From: Haliotis rubra
Lineage: Eukaryota
Length of the DNA stretch: 64,000 bases
Direction of reading: 5' to 3'
NCBI RefSeq assembly: GCF_003918875.1
Contig: NW_025765400.1
Coordinates: 1 to 64,000 of the forward strand
Position 1 is the stretch's first letter, and each line of letters opens with the position of its first letter. The notes beneath the pieces are model-generated. The model searched no databases, had not been told where the DNA came from, and saw only the letters and a program-made list of their open reading frames with translations. Shown in pieces: positions 22,327 through 59,697 of the stretch. The position numbers were made by a program, and so were the translations under genes.

Positions 22327-25300
22327 TCATGCAAGTACAGCTCCTCCCATTTTCTTTCTCAACAATAGTGATAAACCCCCGTCAAAACCAGCCGGCGGCC
22401 GAAGATCCCACGTTGATCTTGATAACCTTCGTAAGCCTCCAATCTTTGCTGTGTGTCATATAAAAGCATTATCAAATTTTGTAAAAATACTTTTACATAA
22501 TTACACATCATGCATTATCAGAAATGTCTTAGCCATAAAAGCATGTTAAATTAAGTACACTCCGAAAGAAATGGTAATATTTATCTAACAGTGAATAATA
22601 CACCACAGATTAGATATAATCGATTTAGATTAATGAAGGCAAATTATGGATGATGGATGTTTTGATCATAACAGAATAAGACGTCGACATACATATAAGT
22701 ATCTTCCCTTAACAGATTATATATGATACAAAATAGAATTTAAGAGTCGCTATATAACATATTCACTACTTTTATACATTAGGAGTAATTAAAACTGGTT
22801 AATAAAATGGAACATTTAATGACATCGGCATGGTGAATGTCCAAAAGTTCCACCAGTTGAGAAATGTGAATCAAAAGTATTTCTGTTTGCTGCTTAGGAC
22901 CAGTCAGTTCCTATTCGTAACGCCAATGTGTGATTTTACATCAAACTGTAATTCTGATTGTGTAGTGAATTTAATTAGACGTGGATGTCCAGCTTTGGCA
23001 CAGACACATGATGCTCGGTTGTTTTATTATCGCTTTCGTCTTTCTTGTGTCCACACTTCCTAGATTTTAGTGTTCACCCCGCTAGTGCATGCTCATGTCG
23101 CACTACATGTACAGTGACGAGGAAGGACGAAAAATCTATGCCGAGTGAATTGAACTTTGTGAACTCACGAGGGACAGATAATCCGGTCCTTCCTCGACGC
23201 AGTACATTTAGTTTATTGCTTTTATGAACCATCGTCAAATTAAAACATGAGAGGCTAAAACGATCTTAACACAAATCCTTTATGTGAAAGGCGAAAGCGT
23301 ATTTTGCCATTTTTCTAAGCGCGTGAAATAGCAAAATTTCGAGGAATGTCAGCTGAGCACAGAGCAACTACAAAGTGATTCTAGGATAGTCAAATTGATC
23401 AATTGGAACGCATTGATTTCTAAGAATATGAGAAACAGTTTTCCAATTTAAGGATTCAGCATTAATTTGGTATCAAAATTAAATGTTTGGAAGTAAAGGA
23501 TACAGGGTATCTGGTAAGTAGTCAGACATGTTAAAATTGTTCACTGGCCAATTTAGCCATTGCCATTGCACCAGGTTAGATTGTTTGAAAAAATGCTGAA
23601 AAATTAGCAAGTACACAAAATTACACAACGTCAACCAAACGTAATGGCACAAGCTGATTAGAGAAGTGGAACTGATTGACAGATGATGTAAATACTGGTA
23701 GTGGAAGGGTTAGACAGATGATGACAGAATACTGGTAGTGGAAGGGTTAGACAGATGATGACAGAATACTGGTAGTGGAAGGGCTAGACAGATGATGATA
23801 GAATACTGGTAGTGGAAGGGCTAGACAGATGATGACAAAATACTAGTAGTGGAAGGGCTAGACAGATGATGACAGAATACTGGTAGTGGCAGGGTTAGAC
23901 AGATGATGACAGAATACTGGTAGTGGAAGGGCTAGACAGATGATGACAGAATACTGGTAGTGGAAGGGCTAGACAGATGATGACAGAATACTGGTAGTGG
24001 AAGGGTTGACAGATGATGACAGAATACTGGTAGTGGAAGGGCTAGACAGATGATGACAGAATACTGGTAGTGGAAGGGCTAGACAGATGATGACAGAATA
24101 CTGGTAGTGGAAGGGGTTGACAGAATACTGGTAGTGGAAGGGTTTGACAGATGATTTGAAATACAGGTACCGGAAGGGTTAGAGACGGTTTGGAAGACTG
24201 GTAGTGGAAGGGCGAGACAGGTGATTCGTAATACATAAAGTGGAAGGGTTAACGGTAGTGGCAGGGCTAGACAGATGTTTGGGGATACTGGGAGTGGAAG
24301 CGCTTGAGAAATGTTTGATAGTGGCTGTGGAAATCTTAAACAGATGGTTGGGAATTCTATCAGAGGATGGGCCAATCCGACGATTGGGAAGGGGTGAACG
24401 ATGCTAGCCTTATTAGCCAGATTTTCAGTGTCGCTTACCAGGCCGTTCCGTTCTGCCATGTCTCCTTCGTGCAGTGACAGATTGAGCGGTCAACAGGCCG
24501 ACTGAAATTGAACAATATCAAGCCTATAAGCGATACTAAATACTGCAGTTCAATACTAAACGCCTGTGTCACGGCCGCTTGTGTCAGTCACGTTAAGTTC
24601 GAATCCCCACATGGGCACAATGTGTGAAGCCCATTTCTGGTGTCCCCGCCGTGATGTTGCTGGAATATTGCTAAAAGCGGCGTAAAACCAAACTCAGTCA
24701 GTCAGTCAGTCAGTCAGTCACGTTACACCCAAATACACCTAATATACTACTGCCTTAAAGTTACCATGCACGTGTTGAGAACGCATGAAAAACGTATGTG
24801 ATACGCGTGCTAACGGGGTTGCACACGAAGTGATCATCCATTGAACATGCGTGTGCCACGGATGTTGGGCTTGGCTGTAAATGCAGCAATAGTGCCCTAG
24901 TGTTTCCGGAGCACCTTGCGGTCGTTTCACTCTGTGAAACAAGAGAAAGGGGGACGCCTTGGAGTATTAAAGTCTCTGTGTCTGAGTGGGGTTGACATTT
25001 TAAAGGGCAAGTTTACACGAAAATATACCATTTTGACTTCATTTTGTCAACAATAAAAGCATTTTTCTAGTGGGTTCAAAGCCAAAAGAGTATAGATATC
25101 ATGAGTAACAAATTTAGTTTCTACATTATATCGATTCAAAGCTCTATTTTACACATATTTTCATGCTATTAATTTCACTATGTATTTCTCTGGCATTGGA
25201 ACTAGGCACGAGACCAATCTGAATCATTTGGGACCAATTACGTCATAATCTAAGGGGTAACTCTGACCTTTTTAGCCTGAAAGCAAAAGCTTCATAATGG

Positions 25301-25778
25301 CATAACATTTCAACACGTCAGCGTATTTCAACTTTCAACATTTCAGTGTATAGCTTCTAACATTGATAGTAATTACATGTAATTCTAAAATTCCCTATGA
25401 TTTCACACAGGAAAAGGAGTTATTTTTCGTGTACACTTCCCCTTTATCTTGCGGCATGGAATCATCATTGGCTGGCACTAAACAGAGAGTATATACACCT
25501 ACGAGAGATGAGATATAAGGCATGTAAAACCACCGTGATCATGATCAACAGTATGAAATTGATTTTTGTTAAATCAGTTGCCTCCTTCAGTTGTTCGGTT
25601 TGGACCCTATGACATAATTTCTATTGTCATGACATGCTCAAATCTGCTGCAAAGGCCAACAGACTAAATCAAATAGATGCGTATCGCACAATGATACCAC
25701 TGTACTAGACACTGCACTGTACACATATATACAAAAGTCTTAGTACTTACCCAGAACCATCACAAGAAACAACTTCAT
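22327..25778 (-). CDS. Secreted prepropeptide, copy 1 (70 aa; buccalin/allatostatin-A-like core). Exons 25778-25751, 24501-24439, 22448-22327
   Basis: MKLFLVMVL|VGLLTAQSVTA-RRRHGRTERP|AKIGGLRRLSR-STWDLRPPAGFDGGL-SLLLRKKMGGAVLA*. Donors GTAAGT/GTAAGC, acceptors TTTCAG/CACACAG. Both introns phase 1; coding exons of 28 and 63 nt, identical in size to the other three copies. Confidence 0.85.
23678..24370. repeat. 37-bp minisatellite in intron 2 of peptide gene copy 1
   Basis: Unit acagatgatgacagaatactggtagtggaagggctag, about 12 well-conserved copies, then progressively degenerate copies towards 24370. Confidence 0.95.
24593..24720 (+). mobile_element. 5'-truncated tRNA-derived SINE with (AGTC)n tail
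   Basis: B-box GTTCGAATCCC, body ...cccatttctggtgtccccgccgtgat..., tail gctaaaagcggcgtaaaaccaaactc(agtc)n. Related copies at 30037 and 36037. Confidence 0.8.
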
Positions 25779-25820
25779 GTTTGTCAACGAGATGTCGCAA
25801 ACCAAATCTACAATCCGGCT

Positions 25821-25856
25821 GGAAGTGATTGCTGTGTAACAACCTCGCACTAAATA
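25821..25856 (-). promoter_or_regulatory. Core promoter of peptide gene copy 1 (TATA-like + Inr)
   Basis: TATTTAGT (25856-25849) about 30 nt upstream of Inr-like TCACTT (A at 25826). Same position as in the other copies. Confidence 0.55.
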
Positions 25857-27480
25857 TCCATTCCAGTTACAGAGGATGTTTGAATGGTAGCAGCTTTAAT
25901 TCGTATAAAGGAGATTTATTTTCATATTATTTTTTCCATAATGGAAACTGTATTCGGATTTCTTAATAAACTGATTCACACTTTATCATGTTACATGTTA
26001 TTACACTGTATAATAAGGTTGAGTGAGACATCGGCTTGTCAACTCACAATTCTACCATGGCTACATGAAATGCTCGAATTTGATTGGTCAAGCCATAAAA
26101 TCAGACGGTATCAATTTGGACTGAAAATGCGTCTGATTTCACGGCGCTTCACTGCGCACGTATACAACACTGCCGCACTACTTCAGCTTGGCGACCAACA
26201 TGACTAATATCAACACAACAGACATGATGGAAATGCTGATGAAACATTTATTAAAACTCGAAAAATACAATTATACGATTTCTCCTCCACGATTATTAGG
26301 GAACCTCACTATCATAATTATTACCTTCTATTATAAAAATATTCAAACTCAATTACAATATACACAGCCCCAAACATAAACAAACAATATCTAACATATA
26401 AATCAGAAAACCTTGTAAAAATACATCCCTGTCTATCCCTATTTGTGCGGCAAAACGTTCGTAAACATTTACCTACCTGGTAAATGGTATATTTGTTTCC
26501 GTTTAGAATGGGAAATTCGAAAGATAACCGTCAGGCGAAACAACATTTGCCACTCATACTCCATCATGTTCCGTTGCATCGTTCAAAAATGTCAAAAACT
26601 AAACCATGAGAATTCAGTTCTCTGCCAACTTCCCTGAAGGCTGTCACTGCTATGTTCGTACACTTTGAAAAGCTTGGCCACAATCCAGTCCAAAATGATG
26701 AGAACAATGTTCCAAGGAATCCCAAGTTAGTCACATGTACATAAAGCAGCACTGTCACTCTTTTGTCGCATGTCATGATCGACACTCGCCGGTCATAAAA
26801 ATCAAGTCTTTGATGAGTTACAGGTCATAGGTCGATCAGAAAAGGATCTATTCCTCGATTCTGCAGGGTTCAGGTCTGACAGTCAGTCAAGTATTTTCCA
26901 CTGTCACTTCGAATTTCAACCTTTCGCAAAATGTAAATACTGGCTTAATTACAAAGACGCTTCAGATATAGTATCAGGGTCCTTTTGTTATATTCATTTA
27001 AGATAATGGTTAGGTTATACCCAGCATTTGCACTCTGTATAATTGGACGGATTCCAAATAATCTAACATATGTGTTTTATATACATATAGATTGGGAAGT
27101 TAAGTATGTCTGTTACTGAGAAGGTTCAGTTAACCACAAAATTACCACAATGCAAAGCTGTACTTACAAAAACGAATCCACACATAAAATGTCTAGGGGA
27201 TGTGCATGTAAGTTAGTTAGTTCTTATCACGAAGACCGGGATTCAATACATACCACGTTGATATGATAAATATTTTAAAGAAAATAATCAGTGATAACCT
27301 ACTTGAAATGAAAGTTTTGACAAAACATATAGACCATACTCACTTAAAGTGTGTACTCATGGTGCCACGTGCAGAAACAACTGGCTTCATCAGAACACCC
27401 TAATCGTAACGTTTAACGTTTAATCACATACAATTAGTTGCAGCAGAGTTGTAAGAAATGGAAATTGTCCTACTCCAAGT

Positions 27481-27889
27481 CGTAGGCGTGCGACCAATTA
27501 AATCGCTCAGATCCACCTCACCGCAGGCCCGCAACCAATTAAATCGCTTAGATCCACCTCACTGTAGGCCCACGACCAATTAAATTGCTAAGATACACCT
27601 CACCATAGGCTCGCGACCATTTAAATGGCTTAGATCCACCTCACCATAGGCCCGCGACCAATTAAATCGCTTAGATCCACCTCACCGTAGGCCTGCGACC
27701 AATTAAATCGCTTTGATCCACCTCACCGTAGGCCCGCGACCAATTAAATCACTTAGATCCACCTCACCATAGGCCCGCGACCAATTAAATCGCTAAGATC
27801 CACCTCACCATAGGCCCGCGACCAATTAAATCGCTCAGATCCACCTCACCGCAGGCCCACGACCAATTAAATCACTAAGATCCATCTCA
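27481..27889. repeat. 41-bp tandem repeat, about 10 copies
   Basis: Unit cgaccaattaaatcgcttagatccacctcaccataggcccg. Confidence 0.95.
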
Positions 27890-28187
27890 AAGTCACGTCC
27901 CTTTGTTTGTGTCCACATGATGTCGGAGACGTGCCTGAAGAAGAAGAAACTGCACGGGGTTCGCCTGAGGATCTAGCTGCGAACCCAGTTTAGGCTTTCT
28001 TTTTTCCTTTTGTAGTGACTGTGATGTGTGTGCTGTCATTACGCCAACGTATTTTCTTCATTTGACAAATCCATGTAGACAAGTCAGGGAAGACAATACT
28101 GCAAGATGCGAGTTGTATGCGACTTAAAACTACTCAAAAAACAAATTCGATACGATATTTATTGTCACTATAAGTCTTGTTGCTAGA

Positions 28188-28241
28188 GTGAGTGAGTGAG
28201 TTAATATTTAACGTCACATCGGCAATATCTCAGCCATATCA
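28188..28241 (-). mobile_element. Very short 3'-end insertion of the (ACTC)n-tailed LINE family
   Basis: Matches the terminus of the LINE at 57090-57150. 13-bp TSD tcttgttgctaga. Confidence 0.85.
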
Positions 28242-29144
28242 TCTTGTTGCTAGAACTTTTAAAGTGCAGCTTAAATAAGTCCCCACTTTAGTACAAACCT
28301 GACATTGTTGCGAAAGACTTCGTTCTGTGATCTTAACAATGTACATGACTGTTTGAATATAAAACAAATTCAAGCATTTAAAATTGACTTCATCATTTGT
28401 GGCACGCAACTGAAACTTGTCTAGAAGTGATTGTCATGAACACAAGTCATTTGCGCAAGTTGTTCTGTGTATGTGCGAAAGTAGTTTTTTCTTTACCTGA
28501 AACTTCTCATAGACAAGATTGGGGTCTCACAAAGGATTACATATGTATTTACAATAATGATAATACTAAAATGTACATAGAGGTAAATCCAATAGTACTA
28601 TTACCACTATTTGCCAACTCAAACCTGAAATCATAAACACCACGCCAAACGTGTCAACGTATTCTCCAAGGATATCCAATTTGCCCACCGTAACCGTTCG
28701 CTGAGAGTACAAACACCACAACTATCACAAGCAGGACGTGAAACATCGCTTTGTGAAACACCTTTGTCATCGATGACTTACAGCATTTCTTTTCATATAA
28801 TGTCCACCTCCGCTTGCCCTTTACTTCCAATGGAATCTTTCCATTGTTAAAACAAGACTAAACATACTCTGGCGTTGACGTTCAAACTTACAAAATTCAA
28901 TGCTTCAGTTTTGAAGCTGAAGTCTTTGTGTTTCATTAAAACCCATCAGTGGCATTATCTAAGCTGTAGGAACTGGCAACAGTGGTCATTGATAAACTGA
29001 AACTCCCCTCCCAACGTCATATAAAAAGAATATGTGTCTTGTATTCCAGTTCTAAGTAGCAAAACTCTTACAAAGAAGACGTAATTAAAAAATAATATAT
29101 TTGCCATTGTCACGAATACCCGGGGTCATCGTAAATGTTCAATA

Positions 29145-29340
29145 GTCCGTACATATCATATCCGACGCTATTTTATCTTTAGCGGTCCGTACATATATAT
29201 CTACCGCTATTTTATCCTTAGCGGTCCGTACATATCATATCTACCGGTATTTTATCTTTAGCGGTCAGTACAGATCATATCAACAGCTATTTTATCTTCA
29301 GCGGTCCGTACATATCATATCCACCGCTATTTTATCTTTG
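29145..29340. repeat. About 40-bp tandem repeat, 5 copies
   Basis: Unit gtccgtacatatcatatctaccgctattttatctttagcg. A single unit is present in the paralogous segment at 34856-34894. Confidence 0.9.
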
Positions 29341-29699
29341 CACTCAATGAAACCTGGAATTTTATTTGTGGGCGTTCAGGATAACGATTCACATGTTCTT
29401 CTTTGAAGTATGAGTTTAAATCTGAGGAAATTTCAAACACTTCAAATTTGTCACTACGAGGCCCTTTGTTAAATATCTTAAATTAGGATCAAATGAATTT
29501 CCAATGTCCCTAACTTTATGTTACCTGCAAACCCTTCGAAAATACCAAAGTAATAAAGAAATGGTCACATGTATAACCCAGTAGACATATAACAATCTGA
29601 AGTGGGATTGATGTGACTGAGACATTAAACCTGACCACAACTTTGATGTAAAACAAATCTATTTCCGAAATGCGTTAGTAAAAGCAAAGGAATATCTGA

Positions 29700-29936
29700 G
29701 TGAGTGAGTTAATATTTAACGTCACATCGGTAATGTTATCCACGTTTCAGACATATTTTAGTCGTTGATAAAGAATCTGTGCATATTATAAAATCTGTCG
29801 TCAAAGGACAGTAAAACAACTAGATTATCCCACTTAGAATTAAAAACAACTAAACTAAAAAACAAATGACATTTTTTTAGACAATACAATATAAAAACAG
29901 GCTAAAGATTGCCAACAAGCGAAGGTAGATCACAAT
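29700..29936 (-). mobile_element. 5'-truncated LINE 3' end
   Basis: gtgagtgagttaatatttaacgtcacatcgg... with TSD aaggaat(a/g)tctga. Empty site in the paralog at about 35267-35285. Confidence 0.85.
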
Positions 29937-30036
29937 AAGGAATGTCTGAACTTCTATGCACCAGTCATTATTCATAATTCAAACAAGTGGCTTTTTTGGT
30001 TCATCGAAGACTTTGATGGTCTGGTTTATAACAGTG

Positions 30037-35329: not shown

Positions 35330-36020
35330 GATCTGTTTGATTGGCATTTTAGAAGTTGATGGATAATAGAAAAAGTATTATACTTTATGGACAACTTCTT
35401 TATTTGTTATGATGTGAAGTGAGGGAGGAAGCCATTATATTGTATTATTGCCCCATCTGCTATGTATACCTTTTCCGCCTCCTCAATATTGGCTTCCTCT
35501 CATTGTTATTGTATTATTACCTACCCCATCTGCTATGTATACCCTTGTTCTGCCTCCCTCAACCTTGGCTTCCCCCATTGCTATTGTATATAACCTACCC
35601 AATCTGTAATGTATACCTTGTTCCGCCTCCTCAATCATTGGCTTCCTCCTATTGTTATTGTATTATTACCTACCCCATCTGCTATGTATACCTTGTTCTG
35701 CCTCCTCAACCTTGGCTTCCTCCCATTGCTCTTTGTATTATTACCTACCCAATCTGTTATGTATACCTTGTTCCGCCTCCCTCAACATTGGCCTCCTCCC
35801 ATTGTTATAGTATTATTACTTCCATCCCATTGTTGTTGTTGTTAATCTCTTTGATGTATTCCCTTATGTTGTCTTACTTAATCCTTGTTACATGTATATA
35901 AGTCGGTTCTGTGCTGTATTACTTTGCTCTTGCTGGACAACGATATAAGACGCTATACCGAAATGACCCATCATAACAAATAAAGAAGTTGTTATCCATA
36001 AAGTATTATACTTTTCTATC
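35330..36020. mobile_element. Penelope-like non-autonomous insertion with inverted terminal segment and internal 70-bp-scale tandem repeats
   Basis: 12-bp TSD ggtctggtttat (empty site at about 30018). About 50-bp inverted repeat 35366-35414 / 35970-36019. Internal repeats 35440-35820. ...cgaaa...aataaagaagttgttatccat terminus. Confidence 0.6.
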
Positions 36021-37915: not shown

Positions 37916-39895
37916 TTAATTGTATAACATTTCTTTGTCCTCATTGGTTTCACAGCGATTCTTTTGACTACAGAATTGAAGTAAACTTGCATATAATGTA
38001 GGAAACTGTATATCAGAACAAGTGTTGCAGAACAAAAATGATTTATTGCTCATTTTGTTTTGATGCACATTAGAATCGTAGCGCACGTGTTCCTTCCATC
38101 TCACCATTCCGTGCCAGAACGTGATACACTTCTGCCTTTTCAGACTGCCTACGAAACCAGACCAACCACGACGATCTGGTATGGATCTTGTGAACCGTGC
38201 TCTTGCATAGACTGTTTTTGCAAAGGAAAACAGAAGCAAAATGTAATTTATTAGACAATTGGAAAAATCCCTTTCATGGTTGCATATCATTCCACTATAA
38301 CAATAACAATTTATGAAATATACAAAATATTCCACATACATGTCAAATACTTTAACTTGACATAATCACAATTCATTTTCAAGACCAATTCAGTTTTGAT
38401 ATACAATGGACAAATTACTGATACTAAGAGCGATTAAAATAGGTTTACAAAGTGTTCTATAACACTGTCATTTGATTCTGAATGTACAGAATTTTGATCT
38501 AGTAGGAATTTGACAAAGGAAGAAAGCATGCCATTGTGACTATCTTAGAAGTACAGTGGACTCCTTCTAAACCGACATCTCTCTATCCGACATTCCCAGA
38601 AAACCGACATATATAGTTGGTTCCGAATTTGTCCCTATATAATATCATATAAGAAACTCCCTCTCATCGGACCTCTCTATCCCGAATTCCGACACTCAGA
38701 TCCCGTCCGAAAACATGTTTTTAGTGCAAATTGACACTCTCTATTTCTTTGTACCTGAAGTCAGTATGGCAAAACAATACAAAACATGAACTTGACAACT
38801 GTAGCCGCGAGGTTAATATCATAACTGTCTTTCTTTGCTGTCCACAATATTGTATTTGTACTGCCTCTGAACTTGTACAACTACTCCATTTTGAGCTGCT
38901 ATTGTAATCCCTTTGTAGTGAGATGTCGTGCTTTGTAAACTTCCTTATGTTTATGCAATTGCGGATTGTACATCCAGATTCTCGGTTAACTTATTGGTTT
39001 TGTCTTCGACTTACTGGTTGGGGCCAACTTGATTTTTTGCCTTTCTGCAACAACACATTCTGCAGTCAACAGAGTGGCTGAAAAAGAACAAAGTAAGCCT
39101 AAAATTCAACTCTAATATCCTATCTACGCATCTGTGTAACACTGTAGCCAGTACGATCACACCCAAAACACACAATAGTATCTGTCCGAGTGTAAGCAAT
39201 GATTAGCCTTAGGTCCAGTACTTTTATCATTAATATAGATGCTTAGGCTTCTACATTCAGATAATTGAATCGCATCGAATAATACTTGTATATGGAGCTT
39301 CGGGTCTACATATTTCTTTAAATGACTTGATATATTGCAACAAAAGATAAAAGTTTTCAATGTCTTCTCACATTGAGGTTGTGAAATTAGTTATGTTAAG
39401 CAACGAACAGAGGATGAAGCTCAAAGGAAGTAGCAGTATGTTACATATCTGGCCAAGACGAAACATGTAAAGAGTATATCACAAGATATGGTGTGTGGTT
39501 TTGCTTTGCCTGGCGATCGGCATTTAGGTTATACACCTAGGACGGGATGCATTGGAGTCCGTACAATGTGTCCGATTAGGATATCCTTTTTGCGCTGCGG
39601 CATGGTATCTCACTATGTTAGTATGAAGAGAGATTGTCAATCTGTAGGGCATTTGCAGCGGTATCATGATTAATGGTGGGTGGTCTGTGTAGATTTGACT
39701 TTGAACTCAATGTTTAATTAAGTGTCTAAATCTTTCAGAACCCTGTTACCTTTATCTATCATGACATACTACATCATGAACACATCAAAGCAAATGTACA
39801 TTGTACCAATTCTTAAAGTCTCGGCATTATACTGTGTTGATGTAAACAGAAGTGTAAGTATACATACCAAGAACCATCAGGAGAAACAGCTTCAT
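37916..39895 (-). CDS. Secreted prepropeptide, copy 2. Exons 39895-39868, 39077-39015, 38211-37916 (ancestral stop at 38101)
   Basis: MKLFLLMVL|ATLLTAECVVA-ERQKIKLAPT|IYARARFTR-SIPDRRGWSGFVGSL-KR... Donors GTATGT/GTAAGT, acceptors TTTCAG/AAACAG. One extra base at about 38133 shifts the tail after KR. AATAAA at 38047-38042 and 37901-37896. Confidence 0.88.
38554..38740. mobile_element. pogo/Tigger-like terminal fragment in intron 2 of copy 2 (shared with copy 4 at about 58500-58650)
   Basis: ta|cagtggactcc terminus with repeated ccgacat motifs. Absent at the equivalent site of copy 3 (about 48350). Confidence 0.6.
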
Positions 39896-39936
39896 GTTCG
39901 TTGATGAGATGTCGCAAAAAGATCTACAGCAAGCAT

Positions 39937-39974
39937 GGAAGTGATGCTCCTGGTCTCAACCACGACTTTAAATA
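39937..39974 (-). promoter_or_regulatory. Core promoter of peptide gene copy 2 (TATA + Inr)
   Basis: TATTTAAA at 39974-39967; Inr-like TCACTT with A at 39942 (32 nt downstream). Confidence 0.65.
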
Positions 39975-41614: not shown

Positions 41615-43900
41615 ATGGCTGCCACACGTATTCCAAGAGTATTTAATGAAAGAAGAGACGTTCTGCATACATTAGATGTTAATGAACTGTTACAAAGGTA
41701 CAGATTTGACAGAAACAGTATTGTTTACATTTGTGATTCACTCGAACACGAACTACAAGTAAGTCCCGTAACACATCGGAGTTGTGCCGTGTCCTGTGTT
41801 ACCAAAGTGCTCGTCACTTTGAGGTACCTTTGCAACAGGCACATTTCAGATGCTACTTAGCTAACCCACCACCCAACCCACGTACAAACGCTCGAAGAGT
41901 CATCCTACAAACGCTACGAATCGCTCAGTAGAAGTCAACGCATAGTACTCCGTAAGTTTTGCCACCTTTCCCACGTCAACGCATGGTCCGTAATAAGACG
42001 ACGCTTCCCACGCGTCGATTTTATCACAGCGTCAACTTTATCACACCAGGTGTAGTAGGTGTAATTGATGGCACTCACATTCAAATTCAGGCCCCATCGG
42101 TTAATGAGAATGAATTCATTAACAAGCATCACTACCACAGTATTAATACACAGATAGTGATTGACAGCGACGACCGGATCATGGTAGCACGTTGGCCTGG
42201 TTCAACACACGACTCCCGTATCTTGACAACAAGCGGGTTATGTCGGATGTTTGAGGGGAACCAGTTACCCGTAAGTTGTCATCTGCTTGGCGACAGCGGC
42301 TACCCATGTCGGAGGTGGATTGTAACACCATTTTTGCGTCCCCACCCTTGACCACAGACAAAGTACAACAGGTATTATATTATTATTTCTTCGAGTCAGC
42401 TTCGAGTACTAACCACAAGAGTGATTTCCCTTGGCTATGTGAAATACAATCTCCAACATAAAAACGAAATGGAAGAGTTACATATCTTTGCTAAATGCAT
42501 AACTCGGGTAACGTGTCGTACACTGTCTACTTCTTTTGTCGTAAATGCATCTTAGGTGACTTATCAAACAATACGTGTGGACAAATTATGTGCATCATCA
42601 TATCTCCATTTTGATGTCATACCGCCCATGTTTTTTATATGATGATCCAGTGATTCCAGTTGTATTTATTATTGCAAATTTTCAGATCCAATAAGAAAAC
42701 TAGAAACTGTGTGGAAAAAGGGATTGGGCAACTGAAGCGGCGGTTTCATGTACAGTATGTACTACATGGGGAAATCAGACTTTCCCCACAGAAGGCTTGC
42801 AAGGTATTGCATTACAAAAATGTTTTCTGTGACTTCTTTGAAGTAACAAAAATCATAATTTTTATAAAATTTAAATACACATACATGTTTCCCAATAATT
42901 CCCCCAGGAGTAAATATGCATCAGGTACATAAAGAAACCAAAACAATAAATAAGATTAACAATTCCTTTTATTTAATGAAGATATTAACATTTCTCAAAC
43001 ATAAATGTAAAAATGTCTACACTTTTTCAGTCAGTCCTAACATAAACAAGATGGACAAGTCAGAAATATGTGATCTTACTGTCAATAGGACCTCAGTCAA
43101 TATTGACAGATAGTTATTGTTATCTAAAGTTCAACTATAAAATAAATTAGTTATCTCAAAAATCATATTTAAGAAGAATCATCTTTATGAAGTTTAGACA
43201 GCAAATATGAGTATACTTGTACTGTGACCCTAGGTTTACGAACCTTAGAGAGGAACATTTACATGAAATGTTTAGTGAAATTAAAAAAATATATGTATTC
43301 AAATATCTGAATAGTGGCATTTTCTGTACAGCTACTAAATTAAAGTATAGAGATTGCCAGTATCAAATACTCTTAGAGTCAGATTAGTAAGGGTAGGGAT
43401 TTTACCAACAAAGTATTAGATGTGCACATTCGTGGAAAGATAATGATGCCAGAAATATAAGTGTAGAAAAATAACCTTTCTTAGATAAAGGCCTCATTAA
43501 TTGATGAATACCAGTGGTTAGGTATTAAACTAAAATAAGGTCCATGGAAGATTTTCTCACTAACATTACATAATACTGTTATTTGATGAGAAATGAACAT
43601 CTGTTCAAATAGAGTATCAAAACTAAAAATACATGTCAAAATACGCCCTCTACATCATACTTTATAATTAAATTGACAGAAATTTATTGACCAGTATACA
43701 TCATGTTTTTTTACCAAGGTAATAATTGCCTGTGCAGTGCTGCACAACATCAGCAAGGACAGGATTGTCCCAATGCCAGCTCCAAGTGGAAGCAACAGTC
43801 AACCTGGACAGCTGAGGGCACAGATTCAAGGTCTGCCAGCTATTGCTCCCACAGCAACAGGAACCAGATATAGGGAGCAGTTTGCGATCAGCTTCTTTTA
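41615..43900 (+). pseudogene. Harbinger (HARBI1-like) DDE transposase, intron-containing, frameshifted
   Basis: RYRFDR, VLVTLRYL, GVIDGTHI, YHSINTQIV, WPGSTHDSRIL, LLGDSGYP. Exon about 42686-42803 encodes TRNCVEKGIGQLKRRF; exon from 43719 encodes VIIACAVLHNI. GT-AG introns about 42372-42685 and 42804-43718. Confidence 0.9.
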
Positions 43901-47885: not shown

Positions 47886-50735
47886 TCATTCAGTGCCAGA
47901 ACTTGATACACTTCGCCTCCTCAGACCGCTTGCGAAACCAAACTTATGAGAATCTGTTACTGATGCTGTTGCATACACTGTGTCAAACAGAAAATAGAAG
48001 CAAGGTGTAATTTGTTAGACAATTGGAAAGGGAAAAAGTCACTTTCATAATTACTTATCATGTGTGATCAGAAACAATATTCCACTATGACAATTAAAAT
48101 ATATGAAGTATATTCCAATACAAAATGACACCATGACTACAATGATACAACATATTTAACATATATGTCAAACACTTAACATATTCACAGTTTATTTTAA
48201 AGCTAAATTCAATCTCGATATACATTGGTAAATGATGTCAGATTCAAAACACATGTATGGATGCAATAGTGGCTGAATGTACAGAATTTGGATTTGGTAG
48301 GAAAAGTAAACTATGAAAAAGCATGTCACTGCGACTATTGTGACTATCGGGAAAGTATTTCTTTGCACCTGAAGTCATTATGGCAAGTAAATACAAATCA
48401 TGAACTTGACAACTGTAGCCGCAAAGGTAATCGCTGTCTTCCATTGATGTCAGCAATATTGTATTTGTACTGTCTCTGAACTTGTACTGCTATTCTATTT
48501 TGGGCTGCTATCGTAATTAATTTGTAGTGAGATGTCGTGCTTTGTAAAGTTCCTTATGTTCCTTGTGTGATTGCTGATTGTATAAAATCCCTTTCTTTGT
48601 CGATATCACACCGAATTCCCTTACATCCAGAGTTTGGGTTAACCTAAAAGTTTAACATGGGAATCGACACGTTACACCATCAACATTTGCCTTCGACTTA
48701 CCGGTAGGGGCCAGATTCATATTTCCCAAGTTTGCAACGACACATTCTGTAGTCAACAGAGTGACTGAAAAAGAAGAAATTCAGCATATAAGCGAAACGG
48801 AATTCAATTCTGATATCTTATCTAAGCATCCGTGTTACACTATAACCTTTAAAGGTCACATGCAACGTAAAACACAACTCGCAGATTCTGTATGGACGTA
48901 CCGAAACAAATCATCAAAAATGCAAATTCAATTATAAAGATGAAAAATAACGCGATGAAAAAAACCGCGCGAAATCGTAGTTCAAACGATTCACTAATTT
49001 TCCCCCAGCGCTTGGGGGAATTCAAGTGGTTTCAACAGCTGGGCTGCGCTCATAGCACATGCGCAGTGAAATAAGTTCGCGGAGCTTGGAAGCGGGTTGT
49101 CCGGTGAATACTCGGTGAAGGCTTTGGTGTGAGCTATTTTCTAATGTTTTGTTGATATTTCGCCGGCGCGAGCTTTTTATGTGTTATTACAGTAGATTAC
49201 CGATTTAACTGTTTATATAATTTCATTTGTCTATTTCACCACACGTTCTTCTTACCGAGTCACTTTCTCAGTTCAATACTTAAAAGCAATGTCATTATTT
49301 AGCGTTGACAGAATTTCTAATTGTGATATAGATATGTCGTTGTCACAGACAAAACTTAATGTCTGTTTTATTGACACCGATGTGTCTGCCTGCCCGTCTG
49401 CTAATGACAATATACAATACACAACTTCGATCACTGACCACATGCAATTTGAACTTAACACCTATCAGGCTATACACCATAAACAAACGCATTGATTTAT
49501 GGCCCGAGTTAGGTCTCTGTCACATTATGTAATCACACAGACAGGCAGGTGTGATACTTGTACACATGACATGTTATGATGTCTGTTGATTACAAAATGT
49601 TATAAACAAAAAATGAGCATGTATTTACAAAACCCAACATCTCTACATATACACACACAATGAGCCGTGAGCGCTTCTGCAAATGAACCAGCCGTTACAC
49701 TTGAGTGCACATCCACCCGCTCTGACTGGGTTCGGTATTCCGGCTGCTTCGTTTCTTGGGAAGTAAACCCAAGTACAAAATATTGCACTTTTGATTTGCG
49801 ATTGTACGGTTGCAATTTTGTTGATATGTTTTTTCATAACCAGCAATGTATATTATATGTCATGAATAAGTGATAATTGTGTTTTAATTATGTTTGATTT
49901 TTTGGTTGCATGTGACCTTTAAGATCACATCCAAAAACACAGTATTGCCTGTCCGAGTAATAGCCATAATTATCAGGAAGTCAAATTACTTACAGTTGAT
50001 AGAGATGCTCGGGCTTCTACATGCAGATAGTTTAATCGCATAGAATAACACATATACACATGTACGTATATGGATCTTCGGATCTACATGTTTCTTTAAA
50101 TGAATCAATGTTAGGCAACAAAAGATAAAAGTCACCAATGTCTTCTCATATTGAGGTTATCAATTTAGGTATGTTAAGCAACAAATAGAGGATGAAGCTC
50201 AAATGAAGTAGCAGTCTTTTACATCTCTGGCCAGGCCGAAACATGTGAAGTGTATACCATAAGATTGTGCGTGGTGTTCTCCCGCCTGGTGCTCGGCATT
50301 TAGGTGATGTACTAGAGACTGGATGCTTTGGAGTCGGTATAATGTGTCTGAGTAGGCTATCTGTGTAGCGTCGTCACGATATGGCTGAGATATTGCCGAT
50401 GTGATGTTAAATATTAACTCACTCACTATCTGTGTAGCGCCGCGGCATGGTATCTCACTATGTTAGCGCGGAACAGAGAATGCTTTCTGTAGGGTATTTT
50501 CAGCAGTATCATGAGTAATGTGGTCTCTGCGCACTGTAGATTTGACTTTGAACCGAAACTAAGACTCAGTCCAAAGAACCATGTTACTTTCATCAACTGT
50601 GCGTGCAGAAGCCAAACAACCCAAATCAAATGCATGCACATTTTACTGCTACCAATACTCTCGGCATTACACTGTACTACTGTGAACACAAGTGTAAGTA
50701 TACATACCAAGAACAATCAGGAGAAACAGCTTCAT
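47886..50735 (-). CDS. Secreted prepropeptide, copy 3 (60 aa). Exons 50735-50708, 48764-48702, 47977-47886
   Basis: MKLFLLIVL|VTLLTTECVVA-NLGNMNLAPT|VYATASVTDSHKFGFASGL-RRRSVSSSGTE*. Canonical GT-AG phase-1 introns and intact frame. AATAAA about 47 nt past the stop. Confidence 0.9.
48853..49918. mobile_element. Kolobok-type non-autonomous DNA transposon in intron 1 of copy 3
   Basis: TTAA TSD (48849-48852, 49919-49922). TIR aggtcacatgcaac / gttgcatgtgacct (purine termini, unlike the CC termini of piggyBac). Empty site in copies 2 (about 39150) and 4 (about 59305). Confidence 0.85.
50371..50425 (+). mobile_element. Very short LINE 3'-end insertion nested in an old SINE
   Basis: 14-bp TSD ctatctgtgtagcg; (ACTC) tail. 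Confidence 0.9.
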
Positions 50736-50776
50736 GTTCGTTGATGAGATGCCGCAACAAAATCTACAGCAAGGGT

Positions 50777-50814
50777 GGAAATGTTGCTCCTGGTCTCTAC
50801 CATGGCTTTAAATA
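50777..50814 (-). promoter_or_regulatory. Core promoter of peptide gene copy 3
   Basis: TATTTAAA at 50814-50807; Inr variant ACATTT at the homologous position. Confidence 0.6.
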
Positions 50815-51950: not shown

Positions 51951-53309
51951 TGGTGAATATAAGTCACAGCACTCCTTTCACATCCAGAGGAAAGCGATTA
52001 GATATACTTAATGCATCTTGCATGTGACATATTTTTACATGCGAACTGCAGGGACAAGCTGTATTTTTATATTACTGCATCTGACGCGTGAAGAGATACA
52101 TTTTTAAAAGTTGGGATCATGTTTAAAGTATTTCTATTCGCCATCCTCGGCAGTCGACCAGGAACAAATTCTATATATCAATATAACTTCACTCATCTGC
52201 ATCCTTCTTGTTCTATGAGTCAAACATTGATATTGACTGTTATATTTACCGCAAGTATTGCTAGCATTTTCAAAAAAAAATACGGTTTTAAGTGTATGTT
52301 TCAGTTGAACATTATCCACAAAAGCGCAAATATGTTTTCTTTTTTCCCCTGTCACTGTCCGTATGAATACAAATTACATACGCCCACTTTACATGATTAA
52401 AAAGTTTACCAGACACACTGAGGGTTTATTATATGTCATAAAAGTGAACCCTGCCAGGGCATAATATGCCTATTGTAGTAGTAGAATACATTCTCTAATT
52501 AACACCTGCCACAAGGGCCATTCCTTTTCAGTTTGTCATGCAGTTGGTGTATTCACGAAAACTTCATGAACTTGTCAACAGGCAATTGGTTGTGTTGTCC
52601 AAACACGGGCGGATTGAGGCAATTAATACATAAATTCCCTGTTTAATAAATCATAGGGTGACTAGATTAATTTGATCATTTACAAGAAGTAAGTGACAGA
52701 ATTCTTTAAGTCATCATCATTTTAGATCACGTTAAATCATTTCTAGAGAAACCAGTACACAAGCCCACACCATAGATGTTTCCATAAAGATACATATGAA
52801 CGATTCCAGTCTAACAAAAGCATTAAATCCCTAATAAGCAAGTCGACGTGATCTCTAATGCCCAGGATTTATAACCACTTATTATCACAATAGTTTAGGA
52901 AAAATGTTCAAATCTGGAGTCACCTGCTATTTACTGAGGGTCTCAAAAGGCTTGAAACGACGTCTGCACATTTATCTCTGTATGTATCAATATGAAATGT
53001 GTCTGTCACTGTTGTGACACCCGACATTAAGGAAATTATATGTTAAGAAAATACTAAAACCTGTATTGAGAACAAGACGCCAATTGTAACCCAATGCTTG
53101 TTTGGTCGGCATTCTTGAAGTACGACTTTACATATACCAATTTACTGTTGACGTATAGAGGGGCGTTCCCGTGTATATTCTTACATCATTATCAGGCACA
53201 GTGAAAGAACCCCAAAAGGGGCGAATAACCACATCCACATTTTTAATAAGTTTTGATCCCTTGATGACATGGATGTGTCCGAGAAAAGCCATGGTAGGAC
53301 TCATAGCTT

Positions 53310-56300
53310 GTCGCCATCAAGGATGGCCAAACATTCTTCCTCATCTAATTATGTACCTGAATTCCAAAAATATCAAAAACAGCAAGAAAAGAAAGCTATT
53401 AATTTCAAATCAGATATTAGGGAAGACTACAATGAAACCTTTTCGATGCATGAGCTTCATACGTCTCTAGATCAGGCTCATGATATTGCATCAGGAGCTG
53501 ATAACATACATTATCAACTCCTGAAGCACTTACCAGAATCATCTTTTGAGACGCTCTTACATATTTTTTTATGACATTTGGACATCTGGAAACTTTCCTT
53601 CGTCGTGGCGTGATGCTATAATTGTTCCCATCCCTAAACCTCGACGTGATCATACTGATCCTTCCAATTATAGGCCAATTTCACTTACTAGCTGCGTTTG
53701 CAAGACCATGGAACGCATGATAAATAATCCACTTGTTTGGTACTTGGAAACCAATAACCTAATATCAGATATATAATGTGGTATCCGCAAAAACAGAAGT
53801 ACCATCGATCATTTAGTGCGTTTGGAATCTTTTGTTAAGAATGCCATAATTATTAAACAACATGCAGTGTCGATCTTTTTCGATCTAGAAAAAGCATATG
53901 ACACCACATGGAAACGAATCTGCAAAAACCACCCGGACAAAATCCACCCGGACAAAATCCACCCCAAAATTGCAACCTAGGACAAAATCCACCCGGAAAA
54001 AAACCCCCGGACAAAATCCACCCTATGAAAAAAAAACTAATGACATGTTTAGTCACAGAAATGAATTATATTCATATCAGTCATTCATAATCGATAACAA
54101 ACACAACCAAAATATATATGTAAGCACATTTTTGCATTTATAAATATGACAAGATCACATTTTCACATTTCACATTTATGAATTATTCATGCATCAATAC
54201 ATATATAAATATGAGAACAGCATATATTTTCACACATTCAGACATATCTATGACTTAACATCTTGCCACATTTCAACAACGCATTTCAACAACGCTCTAA
54301 CTTCTGCTGGATGGGAAGTAGCGGAGTCTAGAAGAACCTGGTTTGGTGTCTCTCGGGATGTACTGGCCTTCTGCTTCATTTCTGATCAAAGTGTGAGACT
54401 ACTTAATGATACATGAAAGAGGATTAAGTAGTGATCAAAATGTGACAAATGGAGAAACCTTTAATGTTTGAAACAACATCTAGGAACAACAGCCAATTAG
54501 GAAAATGCTATCAAAACAATGCTTGCAATGCTTGAGAAAAACAACTTGATCAAAGATCAGGACACACTAAAACTTTTAACAATAGCAATTTGAGAAGGGT
54601 GGATTTTGTCCATTTTTTTGTTAAGAAGAGGTGGATTTTGTCCGGGGTGGCAATTTTGGGGTGGATTTTGTCCGGGTGGATTTTGTCCGGTCACCCATGG
54701 AAACATGGTATTTTAAAAGACTTACATGACTTTGGATTACGAGGCCGTTTGCCTCAATTTATATCCAACTCTTTAAATGACAGACAATTTCAAGTCCGAG
54801 TTGGTTCAACCCTGTCTGATCATTACAATCAGGATCAGGGTGTAGCACAAGGCAGTATTTTGTCTGTCACTTTGTTTAGCATCAAGATCAACAGTTTATC
54901 CAAGGTGTTAAATGATTCAATTGATGGATCACTTTTTGTGGATCATTTTAATATTTCTTGTCGTGGTAAAAATATGCATACTATTGAACGGCAACTGCAA
55001 TTGTGTTTAAACAAAATAAATAAATGCATATGGTGTCTTGAAAACGGCTTTAAATTTTCTAAATCAAAAACTTATTGTATACATATCTGCCGTACGTACC
55101 CACCTCATAAACTATTTATTAAATGGCACTCCCATCAAAGTCGTCAAGGAGGCGAAGTTCTTGGGTCTAATTTTTGACTCCCATTTAACGTTTCTGCCAT
55201 ATGTTAAATCCCTTAAAGCTAAATGTCTGAAGGCACTTGACTTATTAAAAGTCGTTTCCAATTCTAAGTGGGGAAGGGATCAAACTGCTCTCCTACACCT
55301 GTATCGATCACTGGTCCGTTACAAACTTGATTATAGCTCCATCGTTTATGGTGGAGCCTGCAAAAGCAACCTTAAACTATTAGATTCTGTCCACCACCAA
55401 GGTCTGAGACTTTGTATTCGGTCATTCAGAACTTCTCCTGTTGACATTCTCTACGTCGAGGTCGATGAGCCGTCTCTTACACAACGCCATATCAAATTAT
55501 CTTTACAATATATTACCCAACTATATTCTAACGAGTCTAACCCTGCATTCAACTGTGTTTTCAACCCTCTTTACGAGGATCTGTACAACAAAAAGTCTTC
55601 TCTTGCTCCGCCTCTGGGACTAAGAGTCAAACCTTTCCTTTCTGCTACTGGCATTGAGCTACAAAATATAGCTCCTTCCCGTCTTCTTTCTCCTCCTCCT
55701 TGGCAATTAGTGAGGCCACAAGTTGACCTAACACTGACAACATTTAAAAAATCAGAAACTAATGAATTACAATATTAACACGAATATAACTAATTAAAAA
55801 CTAAATATAATACATACAAATCATTATTTACACATGGGTCCAAGGATGGTGGCGCTGTTTGTTGTGCCACTGTCATTGGATCCAGAGCAATATCTTCTCG
55901 ACTACCAGATAACGGTTCTATTTTCACAGCAGAAGCAAATGCCATATTAACAGATTTAAAATATATTCAAGAACACCCTAAAAATAAACAATATATAAAC
56001 TATTCGTGCCTTCAGGCTATAAAAATCTTTCTTGCAAACATCCACTTTTAATTCAAATTATAGAATTATGTAATGATCTTGCTACTGGCCAATACGACAT
56101 CATCCTCTGTTGGTTACCCAGCCACGTTGGTATTTCTGGGAACACAAAGGCCGATCTTGCTACTAAGGCAGCACTCAACAAATCTGTGACACCACTTCTT
56201 ATTCCATACTCTGATTATAAAGCTGTCATCAAATCTTATATCCGTGATCTAATGCAGAAGAAGTGGGACACCCAAGTAGGTATCAATAAATTACATGCAA

Positions 56301-57150
56301 TAAAACCTTATATTTTGGTTATACCTACTTGGGTTGTCAGTCCAGATTTGAAGAAGTCATCATACGACGATGTCGTATTGGCCACACAAGATATACTCAT
56401 GAATACCTACTGAGGATCCTAGATGAGGATCCTCCGTTTTACATCCCTTGTGATGAAAGAATCACGGTCAAGCTGTCTTGCTTGACTGTGTTGAATATTC
56501 CATCAAAAGTGATAACTATTTCAAATCACGAACTACGAAGGATCATTTTAATAATATCAGTTCTCAGTTAATTATTGCATTTTTGAAAGAATTAGATTTG
56601 TTAACTTATTTGTAAATAGAATATTATTTTATGATTGGGAGTTTAAATTAGTAACCCAGATTTTTAGTGGCTGTATCCTCAAAAAAGGGTTTAAGTACTG
56701 TAAAATTATTGTCCCCCCGAGAGGGTACGTAAGTCCACAAGCATTCAAAGTAAATTAGAACTCTCCACTATTTTTAATCGTAGAATATGTGTACTCTTAA
56801 ATGTATGGCTAGATCTGTCTTAGTTGCTAATGGCTGAAGGGATGGTATAAATCCAGCTAGGGTCCATGTAGGAAGCAAATGTACTGTAAGTCCCCATGGT
56901 CCCTGGTATGGTGATCTAACTTCAGTTGTTGGCAAGATATACCCTGTTTTTACACTTGTCATTTATAGTTAACATGTTTTAGATTTAATTACTGGTTTTA
57001 AATTTATATTTGTGATAAACTAGTAGTTTTACTGTTCTTCGTCAACACTGTTATTTCTAATTTTATTGATCAATAATATAATTATTAATTGTTCTCGTCA
57101 CGATATGGCTGAAATATTGCCGATGGGACGATATATATTAACTCACTCAC
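53310..57150 (+). mobile_element. 5'-truncated I/Nimb-type LINE (RT + RNase H + 3' UTR, (ACTC)n tail), degenerate
   Basis: NYRPISLTSCVCK, FFDLEKAYDTTWK|HGIL, QGSILSVTLF, KFLGLIFD, WLPSHVGISGNTKAD, RCRIGHTRYTH. Ends ...gccgatgggacgatatatattaactcactcac. Confidence 0.92.
53916..54695. mobile_element. Mutator-like non-autonomous element with tandem-repeat TIRs, inserted in the LINE RT
   Basis: 9-bp TSD catggaaac. Inverted arrays of the 15-bp unit ccggacaaaatccac at both ends. Removing the element restores ...DTTWKHGIL... Confidence 0.85.
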
Positions 57151-58083
57151 TGACTCAAAAGCGGTTTCAAAATTATTGTCAATATGTGGAATAGCCACTC
57201 CTTTGCACTAGGTTATTTGGGCAAACATCCCAACATTAACTTCCATTTCTGCAAATTCCATTATTTGTTCCGATTACCAAACCTCTACAGTATCTAATGT
57301 CACTATTTCAATGTGTAATCTGTTATGTGGTATACGGTAGGCATTTCTAGTGTTAAACAAAATCAACTGTTTTGGGCCATATTTGACTCCAATGAGTTGC
57401 GAGAATTATTCACTTTTTCAAATAATTGTATACTTCAGGTACCACAGTCCACCTGAATCAAAGACTTAAAAATAGAGATGCGTGTATATAAACCAGCTGT
57501 TAAATGTGCGGCTTCATCACTTCAGGGTTTTACCGCCTACAGCAGACATTGTTTTATCGCCATTCTAGCAGTGAGTCAATAATGAAGAACACAACTTGAT
57601 GGATAGCTTCATACCGGTGTAAGAATCGACACCAAAACGTCTTTCTATGCAATATACAAGGAGTTATCATCCATTACAGAATAAAAGCTCTTAGTAAATG
57701 ATGAGTCTGTGGAAGCAGAACAAAAACTATTACAATCATTTTCACAGCACAAATAAATAAATGTTAATGCGACAGCGTGTCACACGGTCTTTGTACTCTC
57801 ATTTGATTTGTACTGACGCTTCTTGTCATGCTTTTGTTATTAATCTGTAGCAGTTCGGATTGATATGTAAATCTAGTTTATATTATAATGCAATTGTTGA
57901 TGATATAACATTTCTTTGTCCTCATTGGTTTCACAGAGATTCCTTTACCTACAGAATTGAAGACAACTGAAGACACCGACAAGTAAAACATGTATCAGAA
58001 CTAGTGTTGCAGAACAAAATTGATTTATTGCTCATTTCGTTCTGATGCACATTGGGATCTTAGTGAACGCGTTCCTCTCCATC

Positions 58084-59618
58084 TCATCTTTCAGTGCCAG
58101 AACTTGACACACTTCGCCTTCTCAGACCGCCGGCGAAACCAAACCGACGACGATAATTTGTAATTGATCTTGTGAACCGTGCTCTTGCATACCCTGTTTT
58201 GAAAAAGGAAAATAGAAGAATGATGTAATTTGTTAGACAATTGGAAAAGCCCCTTTCATGGTGACTTATCATTCCACCATAACAATCACATTATATGAAG
58301 TAAATTCCAATGCCAAATGACACCATGACCATAAAATGTAGAATATAACAGATTAAATAAATATACAAAATATTCAACATATATATCAAATACTTTAACT
58401 GAACATTATTCTTCACAATATATTTTAAAAGTCAATTCAGTTTTGACATGCATTAGACAGATTAATCATAATAATAGTGATTAAAAGTGGTTCTCAATCC
58501 CTGTAAACTGACAGATATATTTGGTCCCGAAGTTGTCCCTATGTAATATCATATTAGAAACTGTCCCCCTCTTCCGACATCTCTCTATTCCGAATTCCGG
58601 TACTCAGATCAGGTTCCAAAGCATGTTTTTTAGTGCAAATTGACTCTCTCTATTTCTTTGTACCTGAACTCATAATAGCAGGACAATACAAAACATGAAC
58701 TTGACAGCTGTAGCCGCGCGGTTGATTAATATCTTGTCTTTCATTGCTGTCAGCAATATTGTATTTGCCTTGCCCTTGAACTTGAACAACTACTCTGTTT
58801 TGAGCTGATATTGTAATTCCTTTGTAATGAGATGTCGTGCTTTTTATTCTTCATAATGTTTATGTGATTCTCTAGTATTTTTACTGTCCATCGTCGACAT
58901 GTTTTAATCTTCCAAATGATTTCACTTTTTATTGTATAAATTGTTTTCGTCACTATATGGCTGAGATATTGCCAATGTGACGTTAAATATTAACTCACTC
59001 ACTCCTAATGTTTATGTAATCGCTGATTGTACAGAACTTTTTTTTTGTCGGTTTTACATGGAATTACCGTATTTCCAGATTCTGGGTTAACTTATTGGGT
59101 TCACTATTGGATAACTTCAGAATCGACACCTAACACAATCAACATTTGACTTCGACTTACTAGTTGGGACCAGCTTGATTTGTTGCCGTTCTGCAACAAC
59201 ACATTCTTCAGTCAACAGTGTGGCTGCAAAAAGAACAAAGTACGCCTAAAGTGAAATTCAACTCTGATATCCTATCAAAAAATATGTGTAACACCAAAGC
59301 CAGTAAGATCACATCCAAAACACACAATAGTATCTGTCCGCGTGTTAGCCATGATTAGCAGGAAGTCCAATATTTTCATCATTGTGATAGATGCTTAGGC
59401 TTCTACATTCAGATAACTGAATCGCAAGGAATAACACTTAAGTGTCCCAATCTTTCAGAACCATCTTTTCTTTATCTACCATGACCTACTAGATCATAAA
59501 CAGATACAAGCAAATTATGTACATTGTACCAGTTCTTATAGTTTCGGTATTATACTGTGCTGGTGTAAACACAAGTGTAACTATACATACCAAGAACCAT
59601 CAGGAGAAGCAGCTTCAT
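58084..59618 (-). CDS. Secreted prepropeptide, copy 4 (66 aa). Exons 59618-59591, 59223-59161, 58193-58084
   Basis: MKLLLLMVL|ATLLTEECVVA-ERQQIKLVPT|RYARARFTR-SITNYRRRFGFAGGL-RRRSVSSSGTER*. Donors GTATGT/GTAAGT, acceptors TTGCAG/AAACAG. Intact frame. AATAAA at 58029-58024. Confidence 0.9.
58866..59005 (+). mobile_element. 5'-truncated LINE 3' end in intron 2 of copy 4
   Basis: TSD taatgtttatgt; (ACTC) tail. Empty site in copy 2 (about 38945). Confidence 0.85.
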
Positions 59619-59659
59619 GTTCGTTAATAATATGTCGCAACACAATCTACAGCAAGGAT

Positions 59660-59697
59660 AGAAGTGATGCTACTTGTCGCAACAATGACTATAAATA
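59660..59697 (-). promoter_or_regulatory. Core promoter of peptide gene copy 4
   Basis: TATTTATA at 59697-59690; Inr-like TCACTT with A at 59665. Confidence 0.65.

Follow-up and report, generated by a model that had tools for sequence, protein, structure and literature searches.

A tandem cluster of expressed three-exon genes predicted to encode secreted peptide precursors in Haliotis rubra

A stretch of 64,000 nucleotides (nt) from Haliotis rubra (contig NW_025765400.1, positions 1 to 64,000, assembly GCF_003918875.1), referred to here as the window, contains four related minus-strand loci, copies 1 to 4, which lie 10-14 kb apart amid transposon remains. Taken together, the evidence indicates that this cluster is real, expressed and lineage-restricted, and its products are predicted to be precursors of secreted peptides. 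Our favoured reading, to which we assign a probability of roughly 60%, is a tandem family of transcribed and spliced three-exon prepropeptide genes, whose precursors of 60-70 residues would likely give rise to an extracellular signalling peptide with an F-x-x-G-L end. Secretion, processing, the peptide product and its function are inferred from the sequence. The signalling role, which we regard as most likely, is the weakest step of this reading.

Gene architecture and transcription

The four loci follow a common architecture (Table 1). Scripted splicing yielded, in all four, an ATG-initiated coding exon 1 of 28 nt with a GT donor, an exon 2 of 63 nt between a CAG acceptor with a pyrimidine tract and a GTAAG donor, and a terminal exon 3 entered at CAG. 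Across the loci, the donors read GTAAGT, GTATGT or GTAAGC and the acceptors (Y)nCAG. Both introns are of phase 1 with GT-AG borders and span 0.37-2 kb. The exons measure ~85, 63 and ~190 nt in the mRNA, with coding parts of 28, 63 and 92-122 nt, and the spliced products comprise 70 (copy 1), 128 (copy 2), 60 (copy 3) and 66 (copy 4) amino acids, each beginning with MKL(F/L)L(V/L)(M/I)VL. Profiles built from the promoter/exon 1 and exon 3 alignments recovered these four family copies and no further ones in the window (nhmmer).

This architecture is an exact match to that proposed in a preliminary description of the window, which had been made from the letters alone and had also placed TATA elements at matching positions. 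The TATA-like box is indeed in register in all four copies, as are a CCAAT-like box, the borders of exon 2 and the AATAAA context (alignments A2, A5 and A1). AATAAA, previously reported for copies 2-4, is present there but is not limited to them, as copy 1 has one too. The earlier label of micro-exon genes is overstated for a three-exon gene with a 63-nt middle exon. Schistosome micro-exon genes are mostly composed of many symmetric micro-exons of 6-36 nt and encode small secreted products with a signal peptide at the 5' end. The abalone loci resemble them in the position of the signal peptide and in their small, predictedly secreted products, whereas their three exons include no run of symmetric micro-exons of 36 nt or less, and the label does not fit.

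Transcription was examined in sequencing runs filed under the same species label, three of them DNA-like and six small RNA-labelled. We used three RNA runs (X4-X6) and one DNA run (X1), whose contigs were aligned on copy 4 at 80% likeness, a threshold chosen so that paralogues would land as well. In X4-X6, depth is restricted to exons 1, 2 and 3, plus two repeat-derived stretches within intron 2; in X1, introns and exons are covered alike and exon-exon joints are absent. A contig of X5 with a depth of 624 carries the exact intron 1 joint (59223->59591) and a second joint (58191->59163) bridged by the four letters GATG. Since GATG is the plus-strand reading of copy 2's own junction (exon 2 end ..CA, exon 3 start TC..), both predicted copy-2-type junctions are used. 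Mismatches in the X5 contig coincide with the differences between copies 2 and 4, in 7 of 7 listed cases and 15 of 15 by count. The preliminary description had staked its proposal on spliced transcripts across these junctions, and exon-only RNA contigs with both joints bear it out for the copy-2 type.

Copy-2-type expression is strong and sample-specific, as its X5 transcript reaches a depth of ~500-620, compared to 8-45 for other contigs in the same run, and the depth of the family contig is 4 in X4, ~620 in X5 and 28 in X6. The spliced contig of X6 has joints at 59218->59591 and 58185->59171. Its substitutions fit no copy in the window (at most 4 of 16), and it lacks 6 nt around the junction of exons 2 and 3. 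Beyond the four window copies, at least one further paralogue or divergent allele is expressed. Peptides rebuilt for the X6 and X4 paralogues from an incomplete substitution list were unreliable and were not used.

Relationship of the copies and predicted products

In copies 2-4, the promoter, both introns, the exons and the 3' flank align at 72-85% (blastn; global-alignment values for the introns were inflated by gaps and set aside). The alignment extends over the introns; the likeness between the copies is due to gene duplication and not to chance, and copies 2-4 are whole-locus tandem duplicates. The introns of copy 1 do not align with those of the other copies, which agrees with the preliminary description; the sole block aligned by blastn is the promoter with exon 1 (71-77%), in which ~170 nt spanning the CCAAT-like box, the TATA-like box and exon 1 are in register. 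Alignment is gapless at both borders of exon 2, over its acceptor tract and through its first half, and in exon 3 only patches and the AATAAA context are in register. Judged by these alignments, copy 1 is an old paralogue. It retains the promoter boxes, the start codon, exon sizes of 28 and 63 nt, the phase of both introns, the signal peptide and R-x-x-R-S, as well as a distance of 15 residues from the Ser of R-x-x-R-S to the Leu of G-F-x-G-G-L, followed by a basic site.

The coding indels, of +6 nt (copy 1), -15 nt (copy 3) and -6 nt (X6 paralogue), each have a length divisible by three. With three events, an outcome expected by chance in about 1 of 27 cases, this lends modest support to a putative coding constraint. 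The part encoding the signal peptide is quieter than the rest at both synonymous and non-synonymous sites, with a synonymous divergence (dS) of 0.065 vs 0.26. A conserved signal beside a fast-changing mature part has also been reported in genes for conotoxins and antimicrobial peptides (PMC3862624, PMC5577615).

The first 20 residues contain a hydrophobic core (mean Kyte-Doolittle value 3.0-3.4); positions -3 and -1 are occupied by V and A, respectively. The signal peptide with V-x-A cleavage that had been claimed for these proteins fits such simple rules. We postulate that the N-terminal 20 residues would serve as a signal peptide cleaved after V-x-A, and that a furin/proprotein convertase-type enzyme would remove the basic pro-region at R-x-x-R/S (RARFTR/S in copies 2 and 4, RRLSR/S in copy 1). 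R-x-x-R/S is a minimal furin-type site, supplemented here by an Arg at P6 or P5. At its C-terminal end the core reads G-F-x-G-x-L, and next comes RRR, KR or (copy 1) SLLL-RKK. Cleavage at this downstream basic site (RRR, KR or RKK) and subsequent carboxypeptidase trimming would release a linear, Cys-free peptide of ~15 residues with G-F-x-G-x-L and a free carboxyl group at its C-terminus; the post-signal region is devoid of Cys in all four copies. Copies 2 and 4 have RR/RRR within the 15-mer, and internal cleavage could leave 7-9 residues, with GWSGFVGSL or FGFAGGL as possible shorter products. The tails after the basic site comprise 7-10 residues (SVSSSGTE(R), MGGAVLA) and are not acidic. Signalling peptides with this buccalin/allatostatin-A-like F-x-x-G-L ending would diversify via tandem duplication.

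Several findings weigh against the favoured reading. Copies 2 and 4 differ by 7 synonymous and 16 non-synonymous changes, small counts that give a ratio of non-synonymous to synonymous divergence (dN/dS) of ~0.8, and the exons of copies 2-4 are just slightly more alike than their introns. For these two reasons the young copies say little about constraint, and they show no sign of purifying selection on the core. The earlier argument for selection on a peptide product is not upheld among copies 2-4; what remains of it draws on copy 1 and on the in-frame indels. The claimed combination of R-x-x-R/S and 15-residue spacing stands for copies 1, 2 and 4 and fails for copy 3, which has a 15-nt in-frame deletion, no R-x-x-R site and a net charge of only +2. 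An amidation Gly after the Leu is lacking in four of four copies (RRR, KR, RRR or SLLLRKK follow), and each 60-70-residue precursor holds one G-F-x-G-x-L core, compared to 7-29 in the ~500 residues of a buccalin precursor. None of the three RNA runs showed copy 4 itself at near-identity.

The final point of this kind concerns the reference sequence of copy 2, which has one extra base at 38134/38135, just after the core-ending KR, when compared to copies 3 and 4 (alignment A1). As a result, its open reading frame (ORF) extends to 128 codons, with no stop before its own AATAAA, and runs to 37916. The abundant copy-2-type X5 contig (115 nt, window 58094-58182) crosses the site of the extra base without a gap (89 letters on 89 positions), so the expressed copy-2-type allele appears to be free of it. 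The same run shows zero depth over the 3' untranslated region, and this contig has identical first and last 30 letters. The overlap implies an 85-nt cycle joined at GCACGG, a hexamer found at two places in exon 3 (copy 2 positions 38200 and 38114). Template switching, an error of assembly or a tandem duplication carried by the expressed allele may account for this cycle.

Genomic surroundings of the cluster

Table 1 Features of the four loci (window positions; a slash marks the predicted convertase cut).
Feature	Position	Strand	Remarks
Copy 1 TATA-like box ATATTTA	25851..25857	-	~75 nt 5' of ATG; in register with the TATTTAAA/TATTTATA boxes of copies 2-4 (alignment A2)
Copy 1 exon 1, coding part	25751..25778	-	28 nt; MKLFLVMVL + 1 nt; donor GTAAGT
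Copy 1 exon 2	24439..24501	-	63 nt; predicted remainder of signal peptide and onset of basic pro-region; gapless vs copies 2-4 including acceptor tract and donor (alignment A5)
Copy 1 exon 3, coding part with stop	22327..22448	-	KIGGL-RR, RLSR/S, core with GFDGGL end, SLLLRKK
Copy 1 AATAAA	22226-22231	-	
Copy 2 TATA box	39967-39974	-	
Copy 2 exon 1, coding part	39868..39895	-	28 nt
Copy 2 exon 2	39015..39077	-	63 nt; copy-2-type RNA contig joins exons 1-2 and exons 2-3
Copy 2 exon 3	37916..38211	-	Core RFTR/SIPDRRGWSGFVGSL-KR, end at 38135
Copy 2 AATAAA	38042-38047	-	
Copy 3 TATA box	50807-50814	-	
Copy 3 exon 1, coding part	50708..50735	-	28 nt
Copy 3 exon 2	48702..48764	-	63 nt
Copy 3 exon 3, coding part with stop	47886..47977	-	15-nt in-frame deletion, no RxxR; core HKFGFASGL-RRR
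Copy 3 AATAAA	47834-47839	-	
Copy 4 TATA box	59690-59697	-	
Copy 4 exon 1, coding part	59591..59618	-	28 nt
Copy 4 exon 2	59161..59223	-	63 nt
Copy 4 exon 3, coding part with stop	58084..58193	-	RFTR/SITNYRRRFGFAGGL-RRR-SVSSSGTER
Copy 4 AATAAA	58024-58029	-	

Copy 2 alone has an upstream ATG in its leader (39934-39936), 41 nt 5' of the start codon. Transcripts that include it would carry a 14-codon upstream reading frame whose TGA overlaps the main ATG. In copy 3, an ATG at -68 lies just past the TATA box and is probably 5' of the transcription start.

Repeats surround and invade the loci. A short interspersed nuclear element (SINE)-like repeat starting with GAGTGAGTGAGTT occupies 58860-59051 and recurs near 28190, 29698, 32657, 44642, 50371, 57011-57151 and 63589; intron 2 of copy 4 and intron 1 of copy 3 each harbour one such element. 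Its depth in the DNA run rises to ~8e5, compared to ~80 in the flanks, and it is present in many RNA contigs. The promoter with exon 1 was itself considered as a transposon and rejected, as its DNA depth is ~3-6x that of the flanks vs ~10,000x for the intron 2 SINE and only four copies occur in the window (nhmmer). Intron 2 of copy 1 contains a 37-nt minisatellite (23678-24183, 12 copies, 95% matches), and its intron 1 contains a tRNA-like SINE fragment (~24590-24760) with (GACT)n ahead of it. The interval between copies 1 and 2 contains further tandem repeats with units of 41, 40 and 75 nt (27481-27889, 29145-29339 and 35451-35819), and that between copies 2 and 3 contains a PIF/Harbinger-type DDE_Tnp_4 fragment (41959-42351).

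Outside the cluster, 3307-9560 on the minus strand is a BEL/Pao-type long terminal repeat retroelement with long gag-like, reverse transcriptase and integrase ORFs (Integrase_H2C2, rve, DUF5641), the 5' ORF of which includes a 24-nt tandem repeat. It is followed by a 12-kb block of non-LTR retrotransposon sequence (10001-22000) with a 769-residue RVT_1 ORF (10755-13064, minus strand). On its coding strand this block has 9-11% G, 35% A and 32% C, which gives the plus strand a GC skew of +0.4 to +0.6; elsewhere in the window, G makes up ~19-21%. The low G content could reflect an unusual composition of the element or a signature of G-to-A hypermutation.

Comparison with known families and alternative readings

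Searches for relatives returned little. Word-index searches of protein libraries with the copy 4 protein and with the four-protein alignment gave no match, nor did Pfam for the exon 3 peptides or Rfam over the whole window. The strings of the core and the signal peptide were not found in literature text, supplementary files of a peptidome study on abalone ganglia included. With a profile of the four exon 3 translations, an exhaustive search returned only two 88-residue metagenomic ORFs (E ~1e-4), which we rejected as chance or uninformative matches: they are internally repeated, derive from a 514-nt scaffold and resemble only DLRxPxGFDxGL of copy 1. The preliminary description had conceded that the loci might be exons of an already described larger protein or peptide family, and no such family emerged from the protein-library and Pfam searches.

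The closest resemblance concerns the end of the core. F-X-X-G-L precedes the basic or tail site in copies 1 (FDGGL), 3 (FASGL) and 4 (FAGGL), and FVGSL of copy 2 lacks the Gly of the motif; copy 1 additionally carries KIGGL-RR. Buccalin B, ending in YGFVGGL-amide, comes close to FGFAGGL of copy 4. The predicted layout, a signal-peptide precursor with basic-site processing, is likewise shared with buccalin and allatostatin-A. Active buccalins have the C-terminal motif F-X-X-G-L (F-X-X-G-L/I), and a study of the Aplysia receptor found amidation to be critical for its activation (PMC12509031). Mollusc buccalin precursors yield 7-29 L-amide peptides each (PMC8514136). The abalone loci differ in being several tandem genes in place of one or two and in having a strongly basic pro-region. 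Because they lack an amidation glycine and have a single core per precursor, we rejected their membership in the buccalin family. At the precursor level, the protein libraries gave no match at all, although the length window and short queries used would miss a precursor of 500 residues. The resemblance in F-x-x-G-L may be due to descent, convergence or chance.

A different outcome of the same genes and the same secretion would be an antimicrobial host-defence peptide. The entire Arg-rich, Cys-free mature region would then be active, as in mussel myticalins, and G-F-x-G-x-L with the basic site would only mark the mature end. We consider this unlikely, though by no means negligible. Copies 1, 2 and 4 have net charges of +8 to +11, an isoelectric point of ~12 and 26-28% Arg+Lys, which would suit such a role, and so would the difference in dS between signal and mature parts, the tandem multigene cluster with its frameshifted member, and the very uneven abundance across the samples (depth 4, 620 and 28). 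Myticalins and modiocalins are likewise multigene, and pseudogenes occur among their copies; their genes have a phase-1 intron and encode a conserved signal peptide and a hypervariable, Arg-rich and Cys-free peptide, with a dibasic site ahead of the C-terminal extension (PMC5577615). The trait of a conserved signal with a cationic, Cys-free mature region is found here in copies 1, 2 and 4, but copy 3 reaches merely +2. In contrast to the abalone genes, in which the ATG lies in exon 1, intron 1 splits the signal peptide and intron 2 the mature region, myticalins have a non-coding exon 1 and encode signal and mature peptide together in exon 2, and their extension is anionic and 35-75 residues long, whereas the tails here are short and non-anionic (PMC5577615). 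Pro-Arg-Tyr repeats and sequence similarity to myticalins are absent, and the protein-library searches revealed no similarity to any antimicrobial peptide. Furthermore, the motif and the fixed 15-residue spacing in the old copy 1 would suit receptor recognition better than membrane activity.

Conotoxin superfamilies offer a parallel in gene organization. They share three exons corresponding approximately to signal, pro-region and mature peptide, a phase-1 intron 1, a signal exon far more conserved than the mature exon, and diversification by duplication and trinucleotide indels (PMC3862624). In contrast, the abalone copies have no cysteine framework, with no Cys past the signal peptide in any copy, and no evidence of a venom context. 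Their introns span 0.37-2 kb vs >3 kb, and intron 2 is of phase 1, which among conotoxins is the case only in the T and I2 superfamilies.

It is improbable, in our assessment, that the loci are transcribed and spliced yet non-functional, being decaying duplicates or non-coding transcripts with frames that are open only through recent duplication. Such decay would be in line with the dN/dS and the small excess of exon over intron similarity among copies 2-4, the +1 frameshift of reference copy 2 without an in-frame stop ahead of AATAAA, the R-x-x-R lost in copy 3 and the lack of a homologue beyond the window in the protein-library searches. It would also agree with the odd 3' part of the abundant X5 transcript, with its 85-nt wrap-around contig and its uncovered 3' untranslated region. 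Copy 1 argues against decay, as its introns are beyond alignment, yet its promoter boxes, exon sizes, phases, signal peptide, R-x-x-R-S, spacing and G-F-x-G-G-L are kept. Further points in the same direction are the three of three in-frame coding indels, the RNA contig free of the frameshifting base and a transcript depth far over that of other X5 contigs.

Hardly likely, finally, is a family derived from, or convergent on, the animal's own buccalin/allatostatin-A, comprising fast-evolving, non-amidated, single-copy F-x-x-G-L peptides that one tissue would produce in abundance. Instead of a classical neuropeptide function, these might have that of a pheromone-like signal, or of secreted modulators, antagonists or mimics directed at buccalin/allatostatin-A-type receptors, whether the animal's own or those of another animal.

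Small secreted peptides encoded on short exons, among them hormones, pheromones, defence peptides and toxins, routinely escape annotation based on ORFs and homology. Here, RNA subsequently confirmed the junctions of gene models drawn from sequence alone, for the copy-2 type. The conserved core is similar to the receptor-binding end of buccalin and allatostatin-A, yet it cannot be amidated. If the peptides are active, the cluster would represent a new lineage-specific signalling or defence system; if they are inactive, it would still be a clean case of how a young cluster of peptide genes arises, diversifies and decays.

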